This document shows, in pieces, positions 972-14,972 of a stretch of 50,453 nucleotides of DNA. The stretch is from NCBI GenBank assembly GCA_900088475.1, contig FLMG01000572.1, positions 1 to 50,453 of the forward strand, given 5' to 3'. The notes under the pieces are model-generated. The model worked only from the letters and a program-made list of their open reading frames with translations, made no database searches and was not told the DNA's origin. The stretch is from Hyphochytrium catenoides. Its lineage: Eukaryota > Protista > Hyphochytriomycota. Made by a program: the position numbers and the translations under genes. How positions within the stretch are numbered: the stretch's first letter is position 1; each line of letters starts with the position of its first letter.

Positions 972-1721
972 ATGACTATTATCAGAAGCGCTGTAGTACT
1001 AGTAGCGGCACTCCTGGGCATGCAGCATGCTGCTGGAGCAGAGGCAGCCCCCACAGTCCCACTCCTGGCAAATCAGTGCTCAGCGCATCGTTACGACACG
1101 AACTGCGAAGGATTTGACATTCGCAGGACGGTCAGAGCATCAGCTACAGACTGCTGTTTAGACTGTCAGCTCACACCAGGCTGTAGCTTATATACTTGGA
1201 GCGACGCAAACGGCGGGACTTGCTTCTTAAAGTCGGAATGTGGTCAGCCCACACTCTCGCTTAGGGCTGCTGCTATTTATACGGGATGGATGGACTGCAC
1301 CTTTAGACGTGATGTGGATCTTGTGGGCAACGATGTAGGAAACGTCAAGCGGACCAGAGCAGAGGATTGCTGTCCAGCTTGCGAAGAGAACAAAGATTGC
1401 ACTGCATGGACCTGGACTGACTTTGAGGGCGGCACCTGCTGGTTAAAGTCGAAGGGCGGTGCGGAGGTTCAGTCATGGGGCTCAATCTCTGGCACCTCCA
1501 CGAAGCGGCGCTGCTTACTATCTCAGGGTTGGGACTACGTAGGCAATGATATTGGCAGCGTATGGGAACCCGAGCCAGAGCGATGCTGTGATCATTGCAG
1601 GGCGAATCCTTCGTGCAAGGCTTTTTCATGGTCCCGCTTTGATGGAGGAGTCTGCTGGTTAAAGAGCGCTATTGGGGAGGTAGTGAGCAGTGAAGTCGTG
1701 GTCTCTGGTTATCCTCGCTAG
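972..1721 (+). CDS. Secreted 3x PAN/Apple-domain protein (CBEL-like PAN repeats), intronless, 249 aa
   Basis: ATG at 972 starts a hydrophobic signal peptide (MTIIRSAVVLVAALLGMQHAAGAE). Three repeats of D(Y/L)xGxD(I/V)...CCxxC...CxxxTW...GGxC(W/F)LKS follow; TAG ends at 1721. Confidence 0.9.
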   Translation: MTIIRSAVVLVAALLGMQHAAGAEAAPTVPLLANQCSAHRYDTNCEGFDIRRTVRASATDCCLDCQLTPGCSLYTWSDANGGTCFLKSECGQPTLSLRAAAIYTGWMDCTFRRDVDLVGNDVGNVKRTRAEDCCPACEENKDCTAWTWTDFEGGTCWLKSKGGAEVQSWGSISGTSTKRRCLLSQGWDYVGNDIGSVWEPEPERCCDHCRANPSCKAFSWSRFDGGVCWLKSAIGEVVSSEVVVSGYPR

Positions 1722-3642
1722 CGAGGAGCATGGTTTAAGTTGCTTTTGAACAATTGGAGACCTCACTCATAGGAGGTATCGTGATCATGCCCAGCCGAAG
1801 GGATAAAACTTCAAACCCCATAGTAGACCATTCATATGCCATCAGGTCTCAATGAGGAGAGATTGTTTATTATAAAAATAACCAACGCAGGGCATTAACA
1901 TCTATTAGTAGGTTCCATTGACCTTAGTTATATCTTCTCTCCATCATTGGTTGACATTCTTTTCTTCATCGTTGGTTGATAATAGTAGTGCAATAATGCT
2001 TTATAACTATTGCGCCTGTGCGCCTTCACCAGTTACGTTTGCGATGAGTTTGCCTGACACCTAACAGACCTTTGTACAATAAGTATATTTGGCATCTAGT
2101 TCTACTACTCGTCGAGCTGGTCTCTCACCTGATGAGTTTCTCCAGCAGGACCTCCTTTTTTGTTCCAGGGCTGAGCTTTTTCTATTAGTTCGCTCTCTCG
2201 TTCAGGGTGGTCAGTTGTCCTTACTACTATGTCGGCGGTCCCACCAGGAGCAAAGAAGGAGGTTCTGACCCGACAAGTAGAGAAGCATTCGGGGGAAGAA
2301 GTTCAAGTTTATTCTCCATTCTTTGTCTTGCAAGCAATTAGATTTCTTCTGCAGTGGGACCGCTTGAGAGCGAACCAGCCCCTCATTCTCCCATCATACA
2401 ATGGTTAGCATACAGTATTCACTCTAGATGGGGCAAAGAGCCTATTATGTCCGGAGTGACGGTGTTGCTGTTGGGATTAAGAGTTAGTAGCGACAAATCA
2501 GCGAATCAGCAGCAAGAAAACTGCCTGTTTCGGGCCCTTTCCGTTTGACAGTTGGACTAGGACGAGAGGAGGATGTTGCAATTGTGAGTCCGCCCCGGTC
2601 TTTCATTGCATCGTCATCGTGATCTTCATCTGAACTTGTTGTGCTGAAGAACGAGTGTAGTAGCAAGATCTCATATACGAAGAATTGCTAATTGCTAAGG
2701 CCTAATAACTTCTATTCAGGTGGAGAAGAGGACAAATCTTCTTCTGTGCACAGCTTTTGGCTACCTCCTTCGAAAACTGTCACTGAGTGGATACATTGAC
2801 AATCATCAAGGAAAGTAAAGTCTTTCTTAGCTGCCACGCCTTCTTTCCAAAAGGCCCTACATTGAACCGACTTGTTTGATCAGAGATAAGATGACATAAC
2901 CCGACCCGTCCTCCATCTTGGGCTTTCAAATTTTCCTTTCAAAGATATGGGCGGACTATTCCCATGCCATCGCACTCACCATGACTGCCTAGGAGTATAA
3001 AGTATGGATACTGCTGCAGTGTATTAAGTTAGGGGGCCAAAAGGGGGAGCGGGTGCTGGCTAAGAGAGCTGTCGCATCGCTCCAATTTATTGAACTGTAT
3101 CTTTCCCGCTTAGCAGCATAACGGACGGGCATAGCCTAACAGAAGGTGGCAAATAGCGACGATATTCGGACGATTTACTTTGGTAAGGTCTACGTTTCAT
3201 TCTGGCTCAATAAAGGCTTGCAGCTTACTAGTACGCAAGAAGAGCGTTAACCCTTCTTCCGTTGTAGACCAAACTACCTTACATAGAAAATGGTCTATAT
3301 TAGGAGGTTCGAAAGGGGTGGACAGTTGGGGGTATAGACAGAGATATAGGACAAACTTTAGGATGTCATTTCCAAACCTCCCATAATTGACGCATAAATA
3401 TTGTTGGCAGTCTATAATATCAGGGTTAATGCATTACAATATAACTAGGAAGGAAACTCCATGGTTTATGAGAGAATGCAAACATGATTTGTTCGCAAAT
3501 CATCAGCGATGATGCGGCTCTTGCTCGGTCGTGAGGATCTTCTCTCTTTTTTCTATCTTCCTCCTCCGTCTCCGTCTCTCTCTTTTCTCACCTTCTTTCC
3601 TGTCTCTCTCTTCGGCGCTTCCCTTCCCTCTCTCTCTCTCTC

Positions 3643-3672
3643 NNNNNNNNNNNNNNNNNNNNNNNNNNNNNN
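3643..3672. other. Assembly gap (30 N) inside a (CT)n microsatellite
   Basis: A run of N flanked by CT repeats on both sides. Confidence 0.99.
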
Positions 3673-3978
3673 CTCTCTCTCTCTCTCTCTCTCTGTCCTC
3701 CCTTTCTCTCTCTCTCTCTCCCTCACAAGTAGTCAAAATTATCTGTCTTTTCACCTTTTTCCTCTCGTCGTCACTTATCCTTTGCTATAAGGATGACCAT
3801 GGAGGAGGAGGGACATCAGAATGGCTCTCTCTTCAGTCTCTCCCCATGTGCCGAGTCCTCTTCTTCCCTCATAAGTGAATCTTCTCTTCTACAGGCGTCC
3901 ACGCCCCGGTCTGTTATTTTGTCCTGTAGCATTCTTTTATAGTCTAGAGGCCCGGACGCCAGCAAAGAGAAGAGCGCA

Positions 3979-5916
3979 ATGAAGGTCACAGCCATTCTTG
4001 TCGCGGCTGTCCTAGCGCTGCATCAGGCGGCAGGCGCAGAAGTTCAGGGTCAAGAAGGCAAAATTATCAATGGCGTGGAAGCGCCACCCTTCAAATACAC
4101 CAGCTGGATGCTTGGCTTGTTCACAACTTCACGCACCCTGCCCATCTGTGGAGCATCCTACATTGGCAAGAATTTGGTGCTTACTGCAGCACGTACGTAC
4201 ATCCTCTCTCTTTTTCCCCGTCTTTCTGTCGTGGGTTTTCGAGTCCAGACCTGGTGCTGTCGGCTGAAGCGTCTCGTCCCCCTTCTTGTCTTGTCATCGT
4301 CTTCGCACTCTTTTCTAGCTGTAGCTTCAAAGCATGTACTAACAGGGTTCTTTCTCTTGTAGATTGCGTCGCTGGCTGGACCGATCTCAGCAGATATAAC
4401 CTGCAGGCATATCGCCACGATATCTACAATACTACGGAGCCCGCCGTGGTTCTTCAGGTGGCCGGCGTCACCAAGCATAAAGACTTTGTGAATGTAAAGG
4501 GTGGAGATGATATTGCTATTATTCGCGTCACCGGGGGCCACGATCTGCCTGAGTACCCCGAACTAGATGACGGAAGCTGGTCCTCTGAAGATCTGCCCCG
4601 GAAGTTCAAGATCGTTGGGTAAGGAGGGGACGCTCTATATTAGTCCAACGCATCCCTGGTAACACCACTCTGTCCTCAGGTGGGGAAACACAGAACAAGG
4701 GACGCAGAGCAACAAGCTGAAGGAGGCTGATGTGGGGTTGACGGCTCAAGCCACGTGCCAACAGCTGTACCCCCGGGAGAAGATCGATCAGACCATGATC
4801 TGCGCTAAAGAAAACAATATTGACACTTGTCAGGGAGACTCAGGTATCAACAACGGCAGATGTAATAGGAAAATATATTAGGGCGGGCGGAAGGAGAATC
4901 ATTGAGAAAAGAATCTAGAAAGAAGGACAGGAGAGACACTGATGTTTGTTCCCGGAAGAATGAGCTTCTGACAATATTGATTGTGCGCAGGTGGACCTCT
5001 TTTTGTCCACAGGGAAGGGAAGGCGCCTTTACTTGTCGGCCTCACTTCTTGGGGCTATGGATGTGCTCAGGCCGAGCCTGGCGTGTACGCTAGAATCTCG
5101 GCGCTGCGAAGTTTTATCGATGAGACTTTAGGCTGTCCTGCGGGCACTACCTTCAATAAGGGAGGGTGCGTTTCTTCTGGCCCTTCTGTACCTCCAACTC
5201 CAGCCCCTACCGCTGCTCCGACACCCGTTATGACGGGTACTCCCCCGCCACCAGTGCCTGCTCGGTGCACTACTCAGCAACTCAATGCTGATTACGAAGG
5301 CTTTGACATCGCTCGGACCAAGAGGGCATCAGCTACTGATTGTTGCAACGATTGTGAGAGCACTAATGGCTGCACGCTCTACGTCTGGACCGGCTGGGAA
5401 GGCGGGACATGCTTCTTGAAGTCTCAGGCAGGCCCATACAAATTCTCTCCTGGCGCCATCGCTGCCTCATATACAGGACAACTTCAGTGCACTTTCACTC
5501 CTGATGTGGACTTTGTTGGCAACGATGTTGGCAATGTCAGGCGCTACAGGGCAGAAGACTGCTGCACTGCCTGCGAGCAAAACAGAATGTGCGGGGCTTG
5601 GACCTGGACCAACTTTGAAGGTGGGACGTGCTGGCTAAAGTCCAAACAGGGTACCGAGGTCGTCGCGGCACCAGGTGCTGTCTCTGGAGCATCTACTAGG
5701 AAGCGCTGCGTCCTATCTCAGGGTTGGGACTACGTGGCTCATGACATTGGAAATGTTCTGGAGTCAGAGCCAGAGCGCTGCTGTGATCACTGCAGGGCAA
5801 ATCCTGATTGCTTTGCCTTCACTTGGAGTCGCTTTAACGGCGGGACGTGCTGGCTGAAAAGTGCCATTGGACAGGTGGTAAGCAGCCCGGATATGGTGTC
5901 TGGGCATGTAATGTAG
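3979..5916 (+). CDS. Secreted trypsin (S1A)-Pro/Thr linker-3xPAN/Apple protein, paralog A, 519 aa
   Basis: Exons 3979-4192, 4363-4618, 4680-4843, 4991-5916 (GT-AG, total 1560 nt, in frame). Signal peptide, activation site EGK|IING, LTAAHC, DDIAII, IDTCQGDSGGP (Asp189-type pocket), SWGYGCA, then three PAN repeats. Confidence 0.92.
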
Positions 5917-8652
5917 ACGAGGGTGCTTAGTCCGTCAAAGAGGAAAGATTCGAGCCTCTTGTCAGGAGCATGCATCGGTTGTCATTCTTTGCAAAAAGAT
6001 ACAAGTCGTCAATGATTGTCACCAGTGGTAGTAATTAAACTCTTCTAGAAGCTGGATGAGGAGATAGATATATTTTATAAAAGAGAATAAGGCAGTCCGA
6101 TTGTCAAATTATTGAACAAGAAATGTCTTTCGTTCTCAAATGGCGACATCATACAGATTCAAGGGTGCCTGGGAGTGTGCTGCCCCAAGCTAATGGAGAC
6201 AGAAAGTCTGTAGCCTACCACATTTCTCCTCGTCGATGGTACTGGCGCTTCCCAGAGGTTACACCGCCACGATAAGCAGGAATACTGACTCAACAGCGTT
6301 AACTGCCCTCTCAGGGGTAACTCTATCTATGCAAGTCAACCACGGAGCGCTAGCGTTTGTTCTGTTTTCTTGACCTACATCCTCCGCCCGTCATGATCGG
6401 ACACTAGCAAGTAAACTTCTCCCATGGCTAACGTACTATAGGCAGCTAAAAACAACAGGAGAAGAGAGACGAAGAAGGCACCGTATCCCTTCAATCCTAA
6501 TCGATATAAGCCCGCGCTCTTGTCTTTCAGGTATTATGACCTTCCTAGTAGCATTCCCTTCTTCTCAAACGGCGATGACGGGTTAGAGTTAGTGTATTGA
6601 ATACACAGACATCCTTCTTCTTGAAGAAGGCATTCCCTACACCTACCTACCCTATTGAGTTCGTTTTGGCTGACCATCTCAGTCAGACCTGAGGACAGGA
6701 TTGTTTGTTGAAGGTTGACCCTCCCCTCCCAAGCGGAGCAGCTCATCTTACACGATGCGGTCGTCTGCAGACGAGGTGCCAACTCTGGCGCCCGACACTG
6801 GGATTTGCCTTGCCGAACGAACTCTAGCTCAAGAAGGAGCCTGACCCATCCAACGATGAGAAACAATTCTAAAAAGATCCTTTCCTAGACCGTATAACTC
6901 CCAGAGGCAAGGCCAAAATGGAAGAGAGGCAAGAACGCTATGCTGACAACAGGTGGTACCATTAGTATTACATCTCAACCTCTCGGCTTTATGACCATCT
7001 AGACGGTAGGAGTGACATGCATTCCCCAAAGACAACCCCAACCATGCGCCTCTAGTGACACGAAGGTCTTGGGATCTTGAGGGGTTGTGGCTCAGCAAGC
7101 TTGCTTTAGTGACCCACCTGATGATTGTTGTTCATCTCTCGATCGTACACTGTCGTTCCTCTCGCTCGTGGCTGCGGTTGCTATAGTTCTAGCATAGAAC
7201 GTTCTTCTCTCCCTCTCTCTCAAACCTCCTTCGAAGCTGGACTAACTACCTTACGAGGATTATTCTGGACAGCAGTTCTCTGCCTTTGAATCTTTTTGGG
7301 TTATTCTGTGTCTTCCTCTCTGACAATCAATCAGTCTTGAGGAACCTCCCATCAATGATTTCTGTCTTCCTGCTGTTGTTTGTCGTGAGCTCGCTTATTA
7401 TCTCCCTTACGTGGTAGCACCACACCCTACCATCATCACTCTTCTTTCCGCTCTTCTTTTCTTCAGTATAAAGCAGGGGCCAGTCCCTCTTCCTCGTCCA
7501 TCAAGGGTGGGTGGCAGTAACGACATGATAACAAGAGGACGACATTGGTAGAGCAGAAGACAGAAGACCAACCCATCCACCATCTTTCACTATCAAATTG
7601 TTTCCTTCTCCTTCCTATGCAGACAAGACTCTCACTCTCTGACCATCATCATCCCTTCATCGTGCTGCATCCTCATCGTGGATGATCATCATCGCTCACC
7701 AGCCGCAGCAGACAGGGGCTCAGAGGGAGCGAGGGAGCAGCCTGAGCTGAAGGAAGGAAGCAGGATCACTGTCTCATTGCTCCATCTGAACTGTATCTCT
7801 CCTCTCCTCCACATTATCAAACGGGAAAATTAGACCCTTCTTTCTAATTTTACTACAAGAATTACGACAAAAACAGAAGGGCCAGACCTGATAATCGTAC
7901 TATAACATACACTCGTCTCATTAAGAATGGGTTTGTATAGTAATTAAGAAACCATTAGGCTTGGGGATTTGAAACATTAGAGGACCGATGGATCTGATAT
8001 TTGTTACCTTTTGGCTTGGAAGAAGGGGGGCGGACAGTGGGGACATAGAAATAAAACCCTACAAATATATTTGGATGTCCTTTGGATACGCAACCCTAGA
8101 TTATCGCAATAACTCTTCAGCAGCTAGATAGACAATAGAATCATAGTCACATTATAACTGCCTGGCATGTTTGCCGCTTTATAGGCTCATAGGTGTCCAA
8201 GCGTATTCGCAAATCATGGCGAATGATGGTTGCTGTCTGCTTTGTTTGTCGCGTGCCCGGCAAGTGAATGTCTTGGTCCTTCCTCTCTCTCTCCATGATT
8301 CTGTCTCTCTGGTCGTCTCGTTCTGTCAGCTTGGACCCTCGTCTCCTTCATTCGCTCTGCCTTGCCTGTCTTCCTCGCGTCAGCGTTCCTCTTCTTCTTC
8401 CTCCTCGGTCGTTTCGGCAAGGTCTCTGATGTCTCTCATCTCTCATCATCATAATGGATAACATGATGGATAATGTGAAGGCCAGAACTTCACGAGGATC
8501 CTCCCAAACTGAAGCAGGCTGCGCATACTCACAACTCAATCTTCTCCTTTGCAGGCATCCGAATCCTGCCCTGCCGCCGGTTAAGTTCTTCCTCTTTTAA
8601 GTTCTTCCTCTTTGTGTAAGTGTCCTTTTCAGGGGCTGACGGAAAGAGGAAA

Positions 8653-10937
8653 ATGAAGATCAGAGCCATTCTCTTCGCCGCCGTCCTAGCGCTGCATCAG
8701 GCGGTAGGCGCAGAAGTGCAGGGTGATGAAGGGAAAATCATCAATGGTGTGGAGGCTCCACCCTTCAAGTATACTGGCTGGATGTTGGGCATGTTTGCCA
8801 GAGGTCGCGCACTGCCTATCTGTGGAGCTTCCTACATTGGCAAGAATGTGGTGCTTACCGCGGCCCGTAAGTGCAGTCGCCATTCCTTGCCACCGTAAAC
8901 CTTTGATATTATTGTGAGGAGCCTGGTGTACTGCCTCTCCAATTCCTTCCTACCAAATCTTACTCCATACAAATGTTGTTCTGGTACCAAGCTCGCATGC
9001 AGCGCCGCGACCTTCTAACCAAATCTCTCCGGCTTCTTCTTAGACTGCGTCGCTGGCTGGACAGAGCTTAGCAAATATAGCCTGCAAGCATATCGCCACG
9101 ATGTCTACAACGACACAGAGCCTGCAGTGGTTCTTCGGGTGACAGGAGTTACCAAGCACAAGGACTATGTGAGTGTGGAGCAGGGAGACGACATTGCCAT
9201 TATTCGTGTTAGTGGTGGCCATGATTTGGACCAATATCCGGAATTCGACGATGGAAGCTGGTCATCCGAAGACCAGCCTCGGACCTTCAGAATCATCGGG
9301 TAACCAATATGCCCTACTCCTGCCAGTGTCCTCTGCTATTAATGCCGTCGTCTCTGGTGCTCTTGGTCTCGGAGTTGTCCTTCCACTTTATCCTGACTAA
9401 CAACCTTGCCTTTCTAGGTGGGGAGTTACGGAACAAGGCCAACAGAGTAACAAGCTGAAGCAGGCAGACGTAGGATTGACCCCTCAGGCAACGTGCCAGC
9501 AGCTTTACCCTGCCAACAACATTGATAAGACCATGATCTGCGCTAAGGGAGAGAATATTGACACTTGCCAGGGAGACTCAGGTAAAACAGCCAGCTAAAA
9601 AGAGGCTAGGATGGCAAGGAAGGGCTAGTAGGACATCGATTATCTTTTTGCTTCCTGTCGACCACCAAAGAGCTCACGTTTTTCATGTCTCGACAGGTGG
9701 ACCTCTCTTTGTTAATAGGGAAGGAAGTTCCCCACTGCTGGTCGGCCTCACCTCTTGGGGGGAGGGATGCGCCCAAGCCCAGCCTGGAGTATACGCTAGA
9801 ATCTCGACCCTTCGAAGCTTCATCGATGAAACTCTGGGCTGCTCCCCAGGCACCACCTTTAATGGTGGAGCCTGTGTACCTACACCAACTCCGACCGGAC
9901 TTCCTACGGCGGCGCCTACTGCTGCTCCCACTGTAGCTCCTACTCCTGAAGCCCCAACAGCAGCACCGACAGTAGCTCCTACTCCTGACATCCCAACTGT
10001 CGCACCAACCGCGGCGCCTACTACTGCACCTACCGTGGCCCCTACACCAGAAACTCCCACTACCGCACCAACCACGGCACCCACCACCGCACCCACTACC
10101 GCACCTACCGTAGCCCCTACACCAGAAACTCCCACTACCGCACCAACCACGGCACCCACTACCGCACCTACCGTAGCTCCTACCCCAGAAGTTCCAACTG
10201 CCGCACCCACACATATCCCAACCGTGGCGCCTACCGTTGCACCAACACCCATTATCACGGAGGCTCCTACTCCAGCTCCTTCTCAATGCACGGTTCAGCA
10301 GCTAAATGCTGATTACGAGGGGTACAACATCGCCCAGACCAAGAGGTCGTCAGCTGCTGAATGTTGCGCGGACTGCGAGACCACCCATGGTTGTACTCTC
10401 TACGTCTGGACCGGCTGGCAAGGCGGGACGTGCTTCTTGAAGGCCCAGGCTGGTCCATACAAATTTACTCCTGGGGCTATTGCCGCATCATATACTGGAC
10501 GATTCCAATGCAGTTTCACCTCGAATGTAGACTTTGTGGGCAATGATATCGGCAATGTCAGGCGCTACAGGGCAGAAGACTGCTGCACTGCCTGCGAGCA
10601 GAATAGACAATGCGGAGCCTGGACGTGGACCAACTATGAGGGTGGGACGTGCTGGCTAAAGTCCAAGCAGGGTACCGAGGTTGTCCCTGCATCAGGTGCT
10701 GTCTCTGGAGTCTCAACCAGGAAGCGCTGCATGTTATCTCAGGGATGGGACTACGTAGCTCATGACATTGCAAATGTCCTGGAGTCAGAGCCAGAGCGCT
10801 GCTGTGATCACTGCAGGACTAATCCAGACTGCATGGCCTTTTCCTGGAATCGCTTCAACGGCGGAACGTGCTGGCTGAAAGGCGCCATTGGACAGGTGGT
10901 AAGCAATCCGGATGTGGTCTCTGGCTATCCGCAGTAA
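8653..10937 (+). CDS. Secreted trypsin-long mucin-like linker-3xPAN/Apple protein, paralog B, 624 aa
   Basis: Exons 8653-8866, 9044-9299, 9418-9581, 9697-10937 (1875 nt, in frame). EGK|IING, LTAAHC, DDIAII, IDTCQGDSGGP, a 137-aa TAP/PT linker and three PAN repeats. Confidence 0.92.
9876..10286 (+). repeat. Coding tandem repeat (TAAP/TVAP/TTAP/TPE) forming a mucin-like linker
   Basis: 12-nt units such as ACCACCGCACCC, plus higher-order duplications of CCTACCGTRGCCCCTACACCAGAAACTCCCACTACCGCACCAACCACGGCACCCAC near 10029 and 10104. Confidence 0.9.
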
Positions 10938-12718
10938 ATCCTGGTGTGAGCTCTGAGCTGCTGCCTCAACAACCAAGGATAGATTAGCTGGCTGTCGTCC
11001 CGCCTATCCCCTGCCAAATAATGGTTGATGCCGAAAGAACTGCAGGTCAGCGAGTAGCTTCAACATTAGTGCCTCATCTTCCCTTATTAGGAGCAAAGCG
11101 TATTGAAAAGTTAGACGCGTCAATTTCTAAACTTTTAAAAAAAATCAAAAGCAGCCAAAGACGAACATAATATTGTAGGCGTTTTATAAAAAGATGTTAT
11201 CTTCAAAGAAGGGAATCCTTCGTTCTTTTGAGAGTCCATCCTAATAAACTTTAAAGATGTCTCGTGTACTTGACGGTGGAAACAGCGTGTGAAGGTTCAC
11301 TGTTACAGCTCTTCACTTGACGCTTCTTCTTGGTTTGGTCTCGTCGTTTCACCAATAATGCTTATGGCGGCTTGAAACAGGAAGGAGGTAACCATGAAAC
11401 TTGAGCATCCTCTCCATATATTATTAGAAGGTCTTGGCCGAGGGCCAGGCAGAGGTTGTTTGTTTGCACTCTTTTCCTAGAGAAAGTAAAAGTTATCCGC
11501 GTATCCGCAGGAGAAGGACGGTTCAATCAGTGTCGGGATGGTTCAAGCAAAGACACAGTACAGACGGGAAATTGGAAGGCAACGCCCAGGTGCTTCAAGC
11601 TTGGAAAGGCTAAGGAATAAGACTTTCGGGCATGCCTGTCCGTCTACCATCGCGTTGGTCAGGGCTCACGCAGTCCTTACACTATAGAAACAAAGGGCAG
11701 CAGCTTGAGGATAAACCCTCAGAGGACCCTCAGTAGTTCTATAGAGTTAGTAGTGCGCTGGTGACTTCTCCCTCGAGGCCCAAGCCCGTCCTTTTATATT
11801 ACAGGTGGAATAACGACCCGGATACACCTGCTGTCCCACCCACCCCCAAGGGGTAATGGTGTCAAGGATTAAGCATTGACAAACCTCCCCACCCGCCTTC
11901 GGCACTACTGTTTTATTCTTGTGTAGTAATAAATGAACCGTAAGTAGCGCTCTTCTCTAGAACTCTGACTATTACCCTTATATTAGTACTTTCGGCTTCT
12001 AGACCGCTGGTCAGTTTAGAGTAGTAGTGTGACATGAGTTAGGAGTCTATCTTGCATCGATAGATTTGTGCAGTGGTGGCACTATCTTCCGCCTTCACTA
12101 CTGGTTTCGGTTGTAAGACCATGGCGATAGTCGGGAAGAAATCAGTGTATATTCTATGTGTTTCCCCCTCCGATTGATAAATAGATGAGAAGGAACAATT
12201 AACCCTAATAATAACTAATAACTACTCAAGCCACTTCGCTAGCTGAATGAGCTTCATTATTGGGGCCGGAGCGGCGGGTTATTCCCTTCTCTTTTTATAC
12301 GGTCGAGCAGAGACCAGATGCCTGTCTAGAAGAGGTGGTGAAGAAGCGATACCGCTGTCCTTCTAGAAATAGCGTGGTGGTGATGATGATGATGCGGCAA
12401 CAAGAGAGAAGGTCGGTCCTCTTGGAGGTTCCTTGCGTTGCTATGGTAAGGAGAAGAGGAGAAGAGACGAGAGCCAAAGAGAAGAAGCAACTGCGATAGC
12501 AATCTCCTCCTCATGGAGGGGAGAGAAGAGAGATTCTTCCTTCCGTTCTCGCTCGCTTCTGGAGATTCATGTGGCGTCTACCTTTACCAGTCTAATCTTC
12601 ATCTCACAGGAGCCTGCCTTCTGCTCGTTGTCAGTGGCCCACCTTTCATTCTCAAAAAATCTCACAGGGGCGCAGCAAAAGTGTCTAAGCGCGCTGCTGG
12701 TGGCGATTGAGCGACACA

Positions 12719-14972
12719 ATGAAGGTCGCCGCCATCCTTCTTCTTGTAGCGCTCTTCCTGTTGCACTACCATGAGAGCACAAGTTCACCAACCACTAAAC
12801 GTTTGCGACCAGGTGACGCAGGCAGGGTCATCAATGGCTGGGAAGCCGAGCCGTTCAAATATACCGGCTGGATGCTGGCAATCTTCGAGAGGGACAACCC
12901 ATTGCCAATCTGTGGAGCTTCCTATATAGGGAAAAACCTGGTGCTCACTGCCGCCCGTAAGCTTCCTCTTTTTGGCGTAGTAGCTCCATCATCTCGATTT
13001 TTGTCAGCCTCCGCTCAGATCTTTCCTTTCCACTTTTGACGCTAACAAGCAGATCAGATGTTTGTCACCTGTGCCAAGGCTGTGTTGAGTTCTCTTATCA
13101 GCTCCTTCTTCATCTGAGCTATGCCATATGTCACCCGCGGCTGATGCAGCCGTCCCTTCGATCTCCGTTCGCAGTCCTCTTGGCTAATGCAAAGTTCACT
13201 TGGTCGTACGTCTGATTAACGCTTTGTGTCTCGTTCATGATCGCAGACTGCGTGGAGAGGTGGCCCTTCACTGACGTCAGTGGATATAGCATTCATGCCT
13301 ATCGCCACGACGTTCTCAACAGCGGTGAACCGGCAGTGGTGATGCAAGTGGTCGACGTCACAATAAGTGAGAAGTATCGCTCACCTGAAACTGGCAATGA
13401 TATTGCTATCGTGAGAGTCACAGGAGGACACGACTTGCCAGTCTACCCTGAGCTTGATGATGGAACCGTATCTTCTGAAGAAGTCCCGCGTGAATTCACA
13501 GTGCTTGGGTAAGTTGTCTAAGCGCGTCATCATTGCGCTCTCTTCCTTGCCTCATCTCTCGACGTCTTCCTCTTTGCAGTCCAACGCATCCTCCGTTAAG
13601 CTTTGCACTCTGTCCTCTCCCCGGCTTCTATCGTCTCGCTGGATCTGACGATTGGTATCACTGAATTCCGGGCTCTTTTAGCTGGGGAGTTACCCAGGAG
13701 GGTGTACAGAGCAACAAGCTGATGGAAGCCGACGTGGATCTAATCCTTCAAGCTACCTGTCAGCAGCTATACTCAGATATGACCACCATCGACCCCACCA
13801 TGATCTGCGCCGCTAGAGATGGCATCGACTCCTGCCAGGGAGACTCAGGTGAGAGGGGTGAAAGAGTGCCACTAGAAGTTGAAAAAGACAAGAGCGATGA
13901 GTTGCGCCACATCTTAAGTTTTTCATAAGATGGAGGCAAGGCAGAAGCACCAGCACGAAAGGATAGAACGAGAAATTGTCTGGAAAGTGGCTTTCAACAA
14001 TCTGACACTCGATGCGCTACCCCTCTAGGTGGTCCGTTCTTTGTCACTCGAAGCGATAATGTACCGGTCATAGTTGGTCTCACATCCTGGGGACTTGGAT
14101 GCGCTGACCCCAATAGACCAGGAGTATACTCCCGGGTCTCAGCACTGCGAAGCTTCATAGATGAAACCCTGGGGTGCCCATCTGGCACTACGTTTAACCA
14201 GGGCAAGTGCGTAGCTCTGTCAACGCCAACACCTCCTATCACTGTGCCTCCTACAGCCGCACCTCTTCCCAAGCCCACACCGGCACCACTGAGCCCTACT
14301 CCGAGCCCCGTCGCACAGTGCTCGGTCCCTAGACCGCATGTTGACTATGAAGGCTTTGACATCGGTCAGACCAAGCGATGGTCTCCCGAGCAGTGCTGCA
14401 CGGACTGTGAGCTTAGCCCAGGATGCATGCTCTACGTATGGACGGGCTGGGAGGGTGGGACGTGCTTCTTGAAATCTAGAGCTGGTCGAGCGCGGCCCCG
14501 TCCTGGTGCTGTAGCTGTTGCTCTTCTCTCGAGCTCGATGTGCACATACCGGGCCTCCGTGGATTACAGGGGTAATGATATTGGCACCGCCAAAGGGAAG
14601 ACGGCCCAAGAGTGCTGCTCTGTCTGTGAAGGGACCGCGGGATGTACTGTCTGGACCTGGACTGAATGGGAAGGCGGCACTTGCTGGCTGAAGTCTAACG
14701 TTACCGCGGCACCCACCACAACTGCTCTGAATGTCATATCTGGGTTGTTGAACCAGCAGCGTTGCTGGTTGGATGATGGGTTGGACTACGTCGGCCATGA
14801 CATTGCTAATGTAAGAGAGACGAATGCAGAGCGCTGCTGCGGACACTGCAAGGCCAATTCGCTATGTAGAGCTTTCTCCTGGAGCCCATTTAACGGCGGG
14901 ACCTGCTGGCTGAAGAGCAAAGTAGGTGAGATGGTGAGCAAGCAAGGCGTCTCTTCTGGTCGCCCTTTTTAG
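12719..14972 (+). CDS. Secreted trypsin-Pro/Thr linker-3xPAN/Apple protein, paralog C (most divergent), 536 aa
   Basis: Exons 12719-12956, 13247-13508, 13682-13848, 14029-14972 (1611 nt, in frame). AGR|VING, LTAAHC, NDIAIV, IDSCQGDSGGP, SWGLGCA and three PAN repeats. Confidence 0.92.

Follow-up and report, generated by a model that had tools for sequence, protein, structure and literature searches.

A tandem array of trypsin genes extended by three PAN_4 modules, with a protease-less copy, in the hyphochytrid Hyphochytrium catenoides

Among the described systems, the subtilase-PAN/Apple proteases of Aphanomyces euteiches stand close to the locus reported here, an array of four genes (g1 to g4) at the start of contig FLMG01000572.1 of Hyphochytrium catenoides (GenBank assembly GCA_900088475.1; the window, i.e., the whole stretch that was analysed, covers 50,453 nucleotides, positions 1 to 50,453 of the forward strand). 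Three of the array genes, g2, g3 and g4, encode a trypsin followed by a Pro/Thr linker and three PAN_4 modules, and g1 encodes the modules without the protease. The Aphanomyces enzymes share with the array proteins a serine protease domain, secretion, a pseudofungal origin and PAN_4 modules at the C-terminus (Kiselev et al. 2023, PMC10084794); the genes form tandemly duplicated clusters in both cases, and in both a targeting role is assumed for the binding module. The catalytic domain, however, is an S8 subtilase in Aphanomyces and an S1A trypsin here; moreover, the Aphanomyces proteases come from a plant pathogen, are active in planta and are secreted as active proteins into the host apoplast (PMC10084794), whereas the organism that carries the array is probably free-living. 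According to the same study, combinations of PAN and trypsin domains are widespread, mainly in animals (PMC10084794).

The animal counterparts are factor XI (FXI) and plasma prekallikrein, in which, as in g2-g4, Apple-fold modules are joined to an S1A zymogen of trypsin specificity with a basic activation residue. These proteins have four N-terminal apples followed by the protease, whereas g2-g4 have the protease first and three C-terminal PAN_4 domains, and thus fall outside that family; FXI and prekallikrein also lack a long Pro/Thr linker, their PAN subfamily differs from that of the array, and the g2-g4 fusion appears to have arisen independently, inside a protist trypsin family. The oomycete PAN/Apple proteins (CBEL and the 'carbohydrate-binding proteins' with three to four PAN domains) have PAN_4 repeats of the same type as the array (38-49% identity), are secreted and are associated with adhesion to polysaccharide surfaces. 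They have no protease domain, and g1 has essentially their architecture, though it seems to have reached the PAN-only form secondarily, via protease loss. Finally, the apicomplexan micronemal lectins MIC4 and SML-2 bind galactose-type glycans on target surfaces through tandem Apple modules, but they are parasite adhesins without an enzyme domain and their similarity to the array PAN domains is weak. An earlier interpretation made from the DNA letters (hereafter the sequence-only reading) had already pointed to the opposite domain order of FXI and plasma kallikrein and to the PAN-tagged proteases of Aphanomyces, and both comparisons hold (PMC10084794).

Set against these systems, the array is a variant of the known PAN-tagged pseudofungal secreted hydrolases, here with a trypsin as the enzyme and with the domain order reversed relative to FXI. 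The order trypsin-then-PAN is uncommon, yet it is built from parts that are attached to many secreted enzymes of this organism. The explanation that we favor as a whole, and consider somewhat probable, is that of a tandem family of secreted trypsin-PAN zymogens, with a PAN triplet that would serve as an anchor, activation by a cut after Lys or Arg, and a protease-less member, g1.

As the sequence-only reading had described, the four genes are paralogs that lie co-oriented on the + strand, between positions 972 and 14972. Their features and those of the spacer between g1 and g2 are as follows (signal peptides of the array proteins were assigned by eye):

972-1721, + strand: g1, one exon, 249 amino acids; signal peptide, short Pro-rich remnant and three PAN_4 domains, without a protease domain
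972-1043, + strand: g1 signal peptide, homologous to the g2 and g3 signal peptides (DNA alignment, exon comparison)
3643-3672, no strand: assembly gap (run of N) within an intergenic CT microsatellite of the g1-g2 spacer
3979-4192, + strand: g2 exon 1; signal peptide, propeptide to GK|IING, trypsin N-terminus up to TAA and the first base of the His57 codon
4363-4618, + strand: g2 exon 2; rest of the His57 codon, Asp102 (DIAII); repeat D7 spans 4360-4622
4680-4843, + strand: g2 exon 3; Asp189 and Ser195 (DTCQGDS-G); repeat D11 spans 4678-4846
4991-5916, + strand: g2 exon 4, a single open frame; trypsin end and Cys loop to 5169, Pro/Thr linker 5170-5265, three PAN_4 domains 5266-5913
8653-8866, + strand: g3 exon 1
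9044-9299, + strand: g3 exon 2
9418-9581, + strand: g3 exon 3
9697-10937, + strand: g3 exon 4; trypsin end and Cys loop, 137-residue Pro/Thr linker 9876-10286, three PAN_4 domains 10287-10934; repeat family D2
12719-12956, + strand: g4 exon 1; signal peptide and a longer propeptide to AGR|VING
13247-13508, + strand: g4 exon 2
13682-13848, + strand: g4 exon 3
14029-14972, + strand: g4 exon 4; trypsin end and Cys loop, linker 14211-14318, three PAN_4 domains 14319-14969

The four exons of g2, g3 and g4 add up to 1560, 1875 and 1611 nt, respectively, each divisible by three (519, 624 and 536 codons), and all nine introns are of the GT-AG type and lie at three common positions, in phases 1, 2 and 1, which bears out the shared intron positions that the sequence-only reading had noticed. 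When the window was compared with itself for repeats, DNA similarity between the paralogs stopped within 3-9 nt of each predicted splice site, and no likeness was seen among the introns or among the spacers. Since the similarity is confined to exons, the exon boundaries are independently confirmed, and its absence from introns and spacers indicates that the duplications in the array are old. Each of the three genes has a single unbroken exon for the trypsin end, the linker and the PAN triplet, so that the junction between protease and PAN needs no splice.

These gene models bear on another reading of the array, namely that it is not a working system at all, but consists of unexpressed relics, or is mis-modelled, with trypsin and PAN exons belonging to separate transcripts. 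In line with it, none of the array proteins was found in the public protein collections searched. Against it stand the intact frames with their uniformly canonical splice sites and the restriction of conservation to exons, and the two parts cannot be separate genes given that the last trypsin segment shares an exon with the PAN domains; furthermore, an environmental protein described below (P0117) encodes the same order without introns. Selection within the array argues in the same direction. Between the g2 and g3 proteins, identity amounts to 81% over the protease and 83-84% over the PAN triplet, and their ratio of nonsynonymous to synonymous divergence (dN/dS) is 0.06-0.17 per protease exon and 0.14 for the PAN triplet, after a synonymous divergence (dS) of 0.6-1.6, indicating that both halves are under purifying selection. 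We therefore regard the relic reading as highly improbable. The g4 protein is more distant (identity to g2/g3 of 63% for the protease and 51-54% for the PAN triplet), and synonymous sites were mostly saturated in comparisons with g1 and g4.

To characterize the protease part, we matched the Trypsin profile (PF00089; curated cut-off 20.6 bits) exon by exon. Exon 1 scored 19.5 bits in g2 and 18.6 in g3, exon 3 scored 42.7, 40.9 and 30.2 bits in g2, g3 and g4, respectively, and exon 4 scored 27.7 bits in both g2 and g3; exon 1 of g4, taken alone, had no Pfam match. The full catalytic triad is present in all three proteins: intron 1 interrupts the codon of His57, in TAA-H-C, after its first base (g2 C|AT; g3 and g4 C|AC), Asp102 lies in DIAI(I/V), and Ser195 lies in GDSGGP, interrupted by intron 3 (GDS-G|GP). 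With both the profile match and the triad, g2-g4 belong to peptidase family S1A. Numbered by motif position, they have Asp189 in D(T/S)CQGDS and Gly216 and Gly226 in SWGxGC...PGVY, which by these motifs is a pocket of trypsin-type primary specificity. A hydrophobic signal peptide is encoded by exon 1, together with a short propeptide whose last residues are GK (g2 and g3) or GR (g4), so that the predicted activation sites read K|IING, K|IING and R|VING, and Asp194 is present. The triad, the Asp189 pocket and the K/R|(I/V)ING sites which the sequence-only reading had assigned to three paralogs are thus found in g2, g3 and g4.

The origin of this protease was traced by genome-wide scans of the 61-Mb assembly (4759 contigs). 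Trypsin matches were found on 12 contigs and PAN_4 matches, at least 88 of them, on about 30, and both occurred together only on the array contig. The genome contains at least 10 trypsin paralogs devoid of PAN domains, ten of which, from six other contigs (C4753, C2762, C274, C2772, C3287 and C2946), were compared with the array and showed 27-67% identity per exon. An APPFKY-type N-terminal motif is common to the array proteases and the PAN-less paralogs, the intron that splits the His57 codon is present in all ten paralogs as in g2-g4, and the intron after GDSG in seven of them. At the C-terminus, seven of the ten stop directly after a small Cys loop, GC.xGT(T/S)F..G.C(Q/T), and the other three continue for 1-17 residues; the loop, GC.xGT(T/S)F..G.C, matched no named motif. 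In g2-g4 the same Cys loop reads on into the linker, which places the fusion point where most paralogs stop. The propeptides of the ten paralogs end in non-basic residues.

A protease tree, built from exon 2 only, united g2-g4 in one clade with a support of 100/99 and the topology (g4,(g2,g3)), and grouped this clade weakly with the in-genome PAN-less paralogs. Judged by these shared sequence features, the array proteases descend from the genome's own trypsin family. Animal contamination, or the transfer of a ready-made Apple-trypsin gene, was also considered and was dismissed in view of the family introns, the Cys-loop tail and the in-genome clade.

The same paralogs set the activation site apart. 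The P1 residues that precede the mature (I/V)(I/V)(G/N/S)G in the ten PAN-less paralogs are S, A, T, L, S, S, N, S, G and S, i.e., a basic P1 is found in three of three fused genes (K, K, R) versus none of the ten paralogs, while Asp189 is present in all 13. As the basic P1 is confined to the fused genes, a trypsin-cleavable zymogen site would be a derived trait of the fused clade, and together with Asp189 throughout it supports self- or cross-activation. Part of what the sequence-only reading had proposed for activation thereby gains ground; the other part, an ordered cascade in which one of the three fused proteases activates the next, was supported by nothing we found. Such a cascade could draw on the combination of basic P1 and trypsin-type pocket in all three, whereby any could cut any other, and on the g4 propeptide, which is distinct, longer than those of g2 and g3 and carries an extra KRLR motif. 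Yet the g2 and g3 propeptides and pockets are near-identical and reveal no hierarchy, the sequences make no distinction between initiator and effector, and auto-activation of the trypsinogen kind accounts for the same features, making the cascade quite improbable.

Downstream of the protease, each of g2-g4 contains the small Cys loop (GCxxGTTFNxGxC), the Pro/Thr linker and the three PAN_4 domains, in agreement with the stalk and the PAN/Apple triplet of the sequence-only reading. The linker is about 32 residues long in g2, 137 in g3 and 36 in g4. That of g3 (9876-10286) is a Pro/Thr/Ala tract of 12-nt and 51-nt tandem units, four times the length of the g2 and g4 linkers, and from this repeat structure the length of the stalk evidently shifts by repeat expansion. 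All four proteins matched PAN_4 (PF14295) three times, with 86-93 bits (90.8 for g1) where the cut-off is 27. Pfam gave no match to CBM1 (PF00734) in g1-g4, so the CBEL-type pairing of CBM1 with PAN is not present in them. Nor did g2-g4 show a hydrophobic C-terminal tail, a membrane segment or a glycosylphosphatidylinositol (GPI) tail, and in view of the missing hydrophobic tail they are predicted to be soluble, secreted proteins.

We next examined the fold of the triplet. An AlphaFold (AF2) model of g1, based on an alignment of 63 sequences, had a mean pLDDT of 83.5 and comprised three Apple-fold units. The top Foldseek matches of this model were apple assemblies of FXI and prekallikrein (E 7e-13, probability 1.0), and further matches were Toxoplasma MIC4, Sarcocystis SML-2, the N domains of HGF and plasminogen and a PAN module of Eimeria, with a probability of 1.0 also for MIC4, SML-2 and the HGF N domain. 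On the strength of the profile and of the modelled Apple fold, the PAN units of the array are members of the PAN/Apple domain family.

With FXI and prekallikrein apple assemblies at the top of its structural matches, the PAN model invites another view of the triplet, in which it would be a protein-recognition or regulatory platform, as in those proteins, that docks substrates or cofactors, dimerises or keeps the protease inactive, rather than a surface anchor. FXI and prekallikrein apple domains bind kininogen and factor IX, and the literature has PAN domains that bind proteins or carbohydrates. However, a flexible linker of 32-137 residues, variable among the paralogs, speaks against a fixed disc under the protease, and the sequence-nearest solved domains are those of the galactose-binding MIC4 and SML-2, albeit with weak similarity (E about 0.003).

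What the PAN block is joined to elsewhere in the genome bears more broadly on this choice. A subtilase (Peptidase_S8) with PAN_4 behind it is encoded in one open frame each in C1195 (L017:163-2151) and, at a contig end, in C137 (L029:2-1639). A polysaccharide deacetylase (C2704, L018:1492-3039) and a Phi_1/EXORDIUM-like domain (C2721, L028:2328-5396) each carry C-terminal PAN_4, a GMC oxidoreductase is joined to five PAN domains (C1924, L027:2187-5252), and in C2960 (L015:463-2142) and C4272 (L026:534-2459) C-terminal PAN_4 stands behind N-terminal domains without a Pfam match. Public proteins, mostly of oomycetes but also from metagenomes, have PAN_4 blocks on subtilisin, C1 peptidase, GH5, GH6 and GH17. 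With a signal peptide, a catalytic domain, a low-complexity linker and C-terminal PAN_4 repeats, g2-g4 fit the layout of the PAN-tagged secreted hydrolases of pseudofungi, a functional class and not a curated family.

Judging from these domain combinations, PAN_4 looks like a general tag of this secretome. Its presence on deacetylase, oxidoreductase, subtilase, Phi_1 and glycoside hydrolase proteins fits a general anchor better than a protein platform, and since these are enzymes of very different substrates, a general anchoring to surface polymers is most likely; the platform, in spite of the analogy with FXI, we consider unlikely. The surface targeting proposed by the sequence-only reading thus finds indirect backing in the PAN blocks of several unrelated secreted enzymes of the genome, while its 'prey or host' as the target is unsupported, given that H. 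catenoides is probably a free-living osmotroph.

Two published statements are affected by these findings. The PAN-subtilase combination has been described as unique to the genus Aphanomyces (PMC10084794), a statement which, if the subtilase-PAN frames listed above are hyphochytrid, would be too narrow. Likewise, the H. catenoides genome paper (PMC5795050) reports four 'PAN lectin' genes, counted with PF00024, which probably understates the PAN family in view of the at least 88 PAN_4 matches.

We then turned to g1, the binding-module-only member that the sequence-only reading had singled out, and which indeed consists of a signal peptide and three PAN_4 domains with no protease. Its PAN triplet is 66-67% identical to that of g2, versus 52-54% for the g4 triplet, and at most 47% identical to the other PAN genes of the genome. 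The g1 signal peptide matches, over 981-1043, residues 1-21 of g2 exon 1 with 48% identity, the sole match to a protease exon in the window outside g2-g4; aligned with the g2/g3 signal peptide it has about 11 of 20 residues identical, and it is followed by AAPTVP...NQC, which resembles the end of a linker. The signal peptides of the other PAN-only genes in the genome are unrelated to it, and that of g4 resembles the signal peptide of one PAN-less trypsin. Because the g1 PAN domains are nearer to those of g2 than the g4 domains are, and because its signal peptide matches those of g2 and g3, unlike those of the other PAN-only genes, g1 is most likely, as far as such comparisons can tell, a fused gene minus everything from the propeptide to the distal linker. 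Comparison of the protease exons against the window found no relics of them near g1 or between the array genes.

Taken together, the mechanism that we favor would run as follows. The native C-terminus of the trypsin is extended, via a Pro/Thr stalk that is probably O-glycosylated, into three PAN_4 modules, and the triplet would act in the manner of a carbohydrate-binding module, holding an otherwise soluble enzyme on a polysaccharide or glycoprotein surface, which may be the organism's own wall or particulate food. The proenzymes would be opened by a cut after the Lys or Arg at the end of the propeptide, which active family members could make themselves, and g1 might occupy the same ligand without cutting. 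The roles thus assigned to the array in PAN targeting, activation and competition by g1 are ones we infer.

Several points weigh against this mechanism. In FXI and prekallikrein, the ligands of the apple domains are proteins and not sugars. The Lys/Arg P1 of g2-g4 may be a single ancestral change, in which case the contrast of three versus ten amounts to one event. The proteins of this genome are absent from the protein collections searched. Lastly, of the separate trees for the two domain types that the sequence-only reading had suggested, the exon-2 trypsin tree unites g2-g4 as described above, but the PAN tree, with distant in-genome outgroups, was poorly resolved owing to long branches and was not used to root the family; the branching order of g1 and g4 hence rests on the identities and the signal peptide.

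A bolder version would have the fused clade as a convergent protist counterpart of contact-activated proteases, in which PAN binding to a particular surface (food particle or own wall) concentrates the zymogens, these, alone in carrying a trypsin-cleavable activation site, fire one another locally, and g1, by competing for the surface, sets the threshold. We offer it as a speculation, less probable than the platform discussed above and only slightly more so than the ordered cascade.

To assess how rare the trypsin-linker-PAN order is, we ran word-index protein searches with g2 exon 4, the trypsin end of g3 exon 4 and P0117 as queries. Among the about 240 PAN relatives listed, both domains were found only in P0117:

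P0117, environmental open reading frame on contig L021 (ENA ERZ28594481, scaffold_40086): intron-free 514-residue frame with Trypsin, a Ser/Pro/Thr linker and three PAN_4 domains

The P0117 protease has Ser189, is without the Cys-loop tail and shows 35-42% identity to the array exons, in local alignments only. It groups, with a support of 99/97, with two PAN-less proteins, P0130 and P0133, to which it is 76-79% identical. With Ser189, no Cys loop and PAN-less relatives of its own, P0117 is probably an independent fusion, i.e., to judge by these sequences, the fusion of trypsin and PAN probably arose twice. P0133 (contig L022) and P0130 (contig L023) keep a linker homologous to the Ser/Pro/Thr linker of P0117 and end before any PAN domain, which suggests a recent gain or loss of PAN in the environmental lineage too. 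The order that the sequence-only reading described for the array is therefore not unique, yet P0117 is the sole other example found, and both fall under the general tagging of enzymes with PAN.

Other searches yielded no further example. An exhaustive search of representative sequences with a PAN-less paralog as the query returned 38,496 matches, and none of the best 150, checked for PAN with a local profile hidden Markov model that found five of five positive controls, had a PAN domain, a weak test of absence since the top of the list was full of multi-trypsin proteins. Scanning JGI metagenomes with the exon-4 alignment brought up no relative, no usable match came from the ESM Atlas, and g1, looked up as an exact sequence, had no record.

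The array would offer a clean, datable case of a secreted enzyme that gains a targeting module, with a proposed sequence in which a trypsin runs past its usual end into a PAN triplet, gains a site that it can cleave itself, and duplicates, after which one copy sheds the protease. With it, the PAN-tagging of proteases extends beyond Aphanomyces, and together with the other PAN fusions of the genome it suggests that the PAN_4 triplet is a general anchor of hyphochytrid and oomycete secretomes, as carbohydrate-binding modules are in fungi. What PAN_4 binds is a worthwhile and directly testable question, for which g1 is a natural probe; the practical importance is modest and current views are not overturned.

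As to the assembly itself, the gap at 3643-3672 lies 1.9 kb past the g1 stop codon and 307 nt before the g2 ATG, and no gene model, repeat or paralog homology spans it. It touches no gene, and therefore the spacing of g1 and g2 alone is uncertain. CT-rich microsatellite tracts are found at 399-735 and 3538-3724, 250-450 nt upstream of the start codons of g1 and g2, respectively, and the second of them holds the gap.

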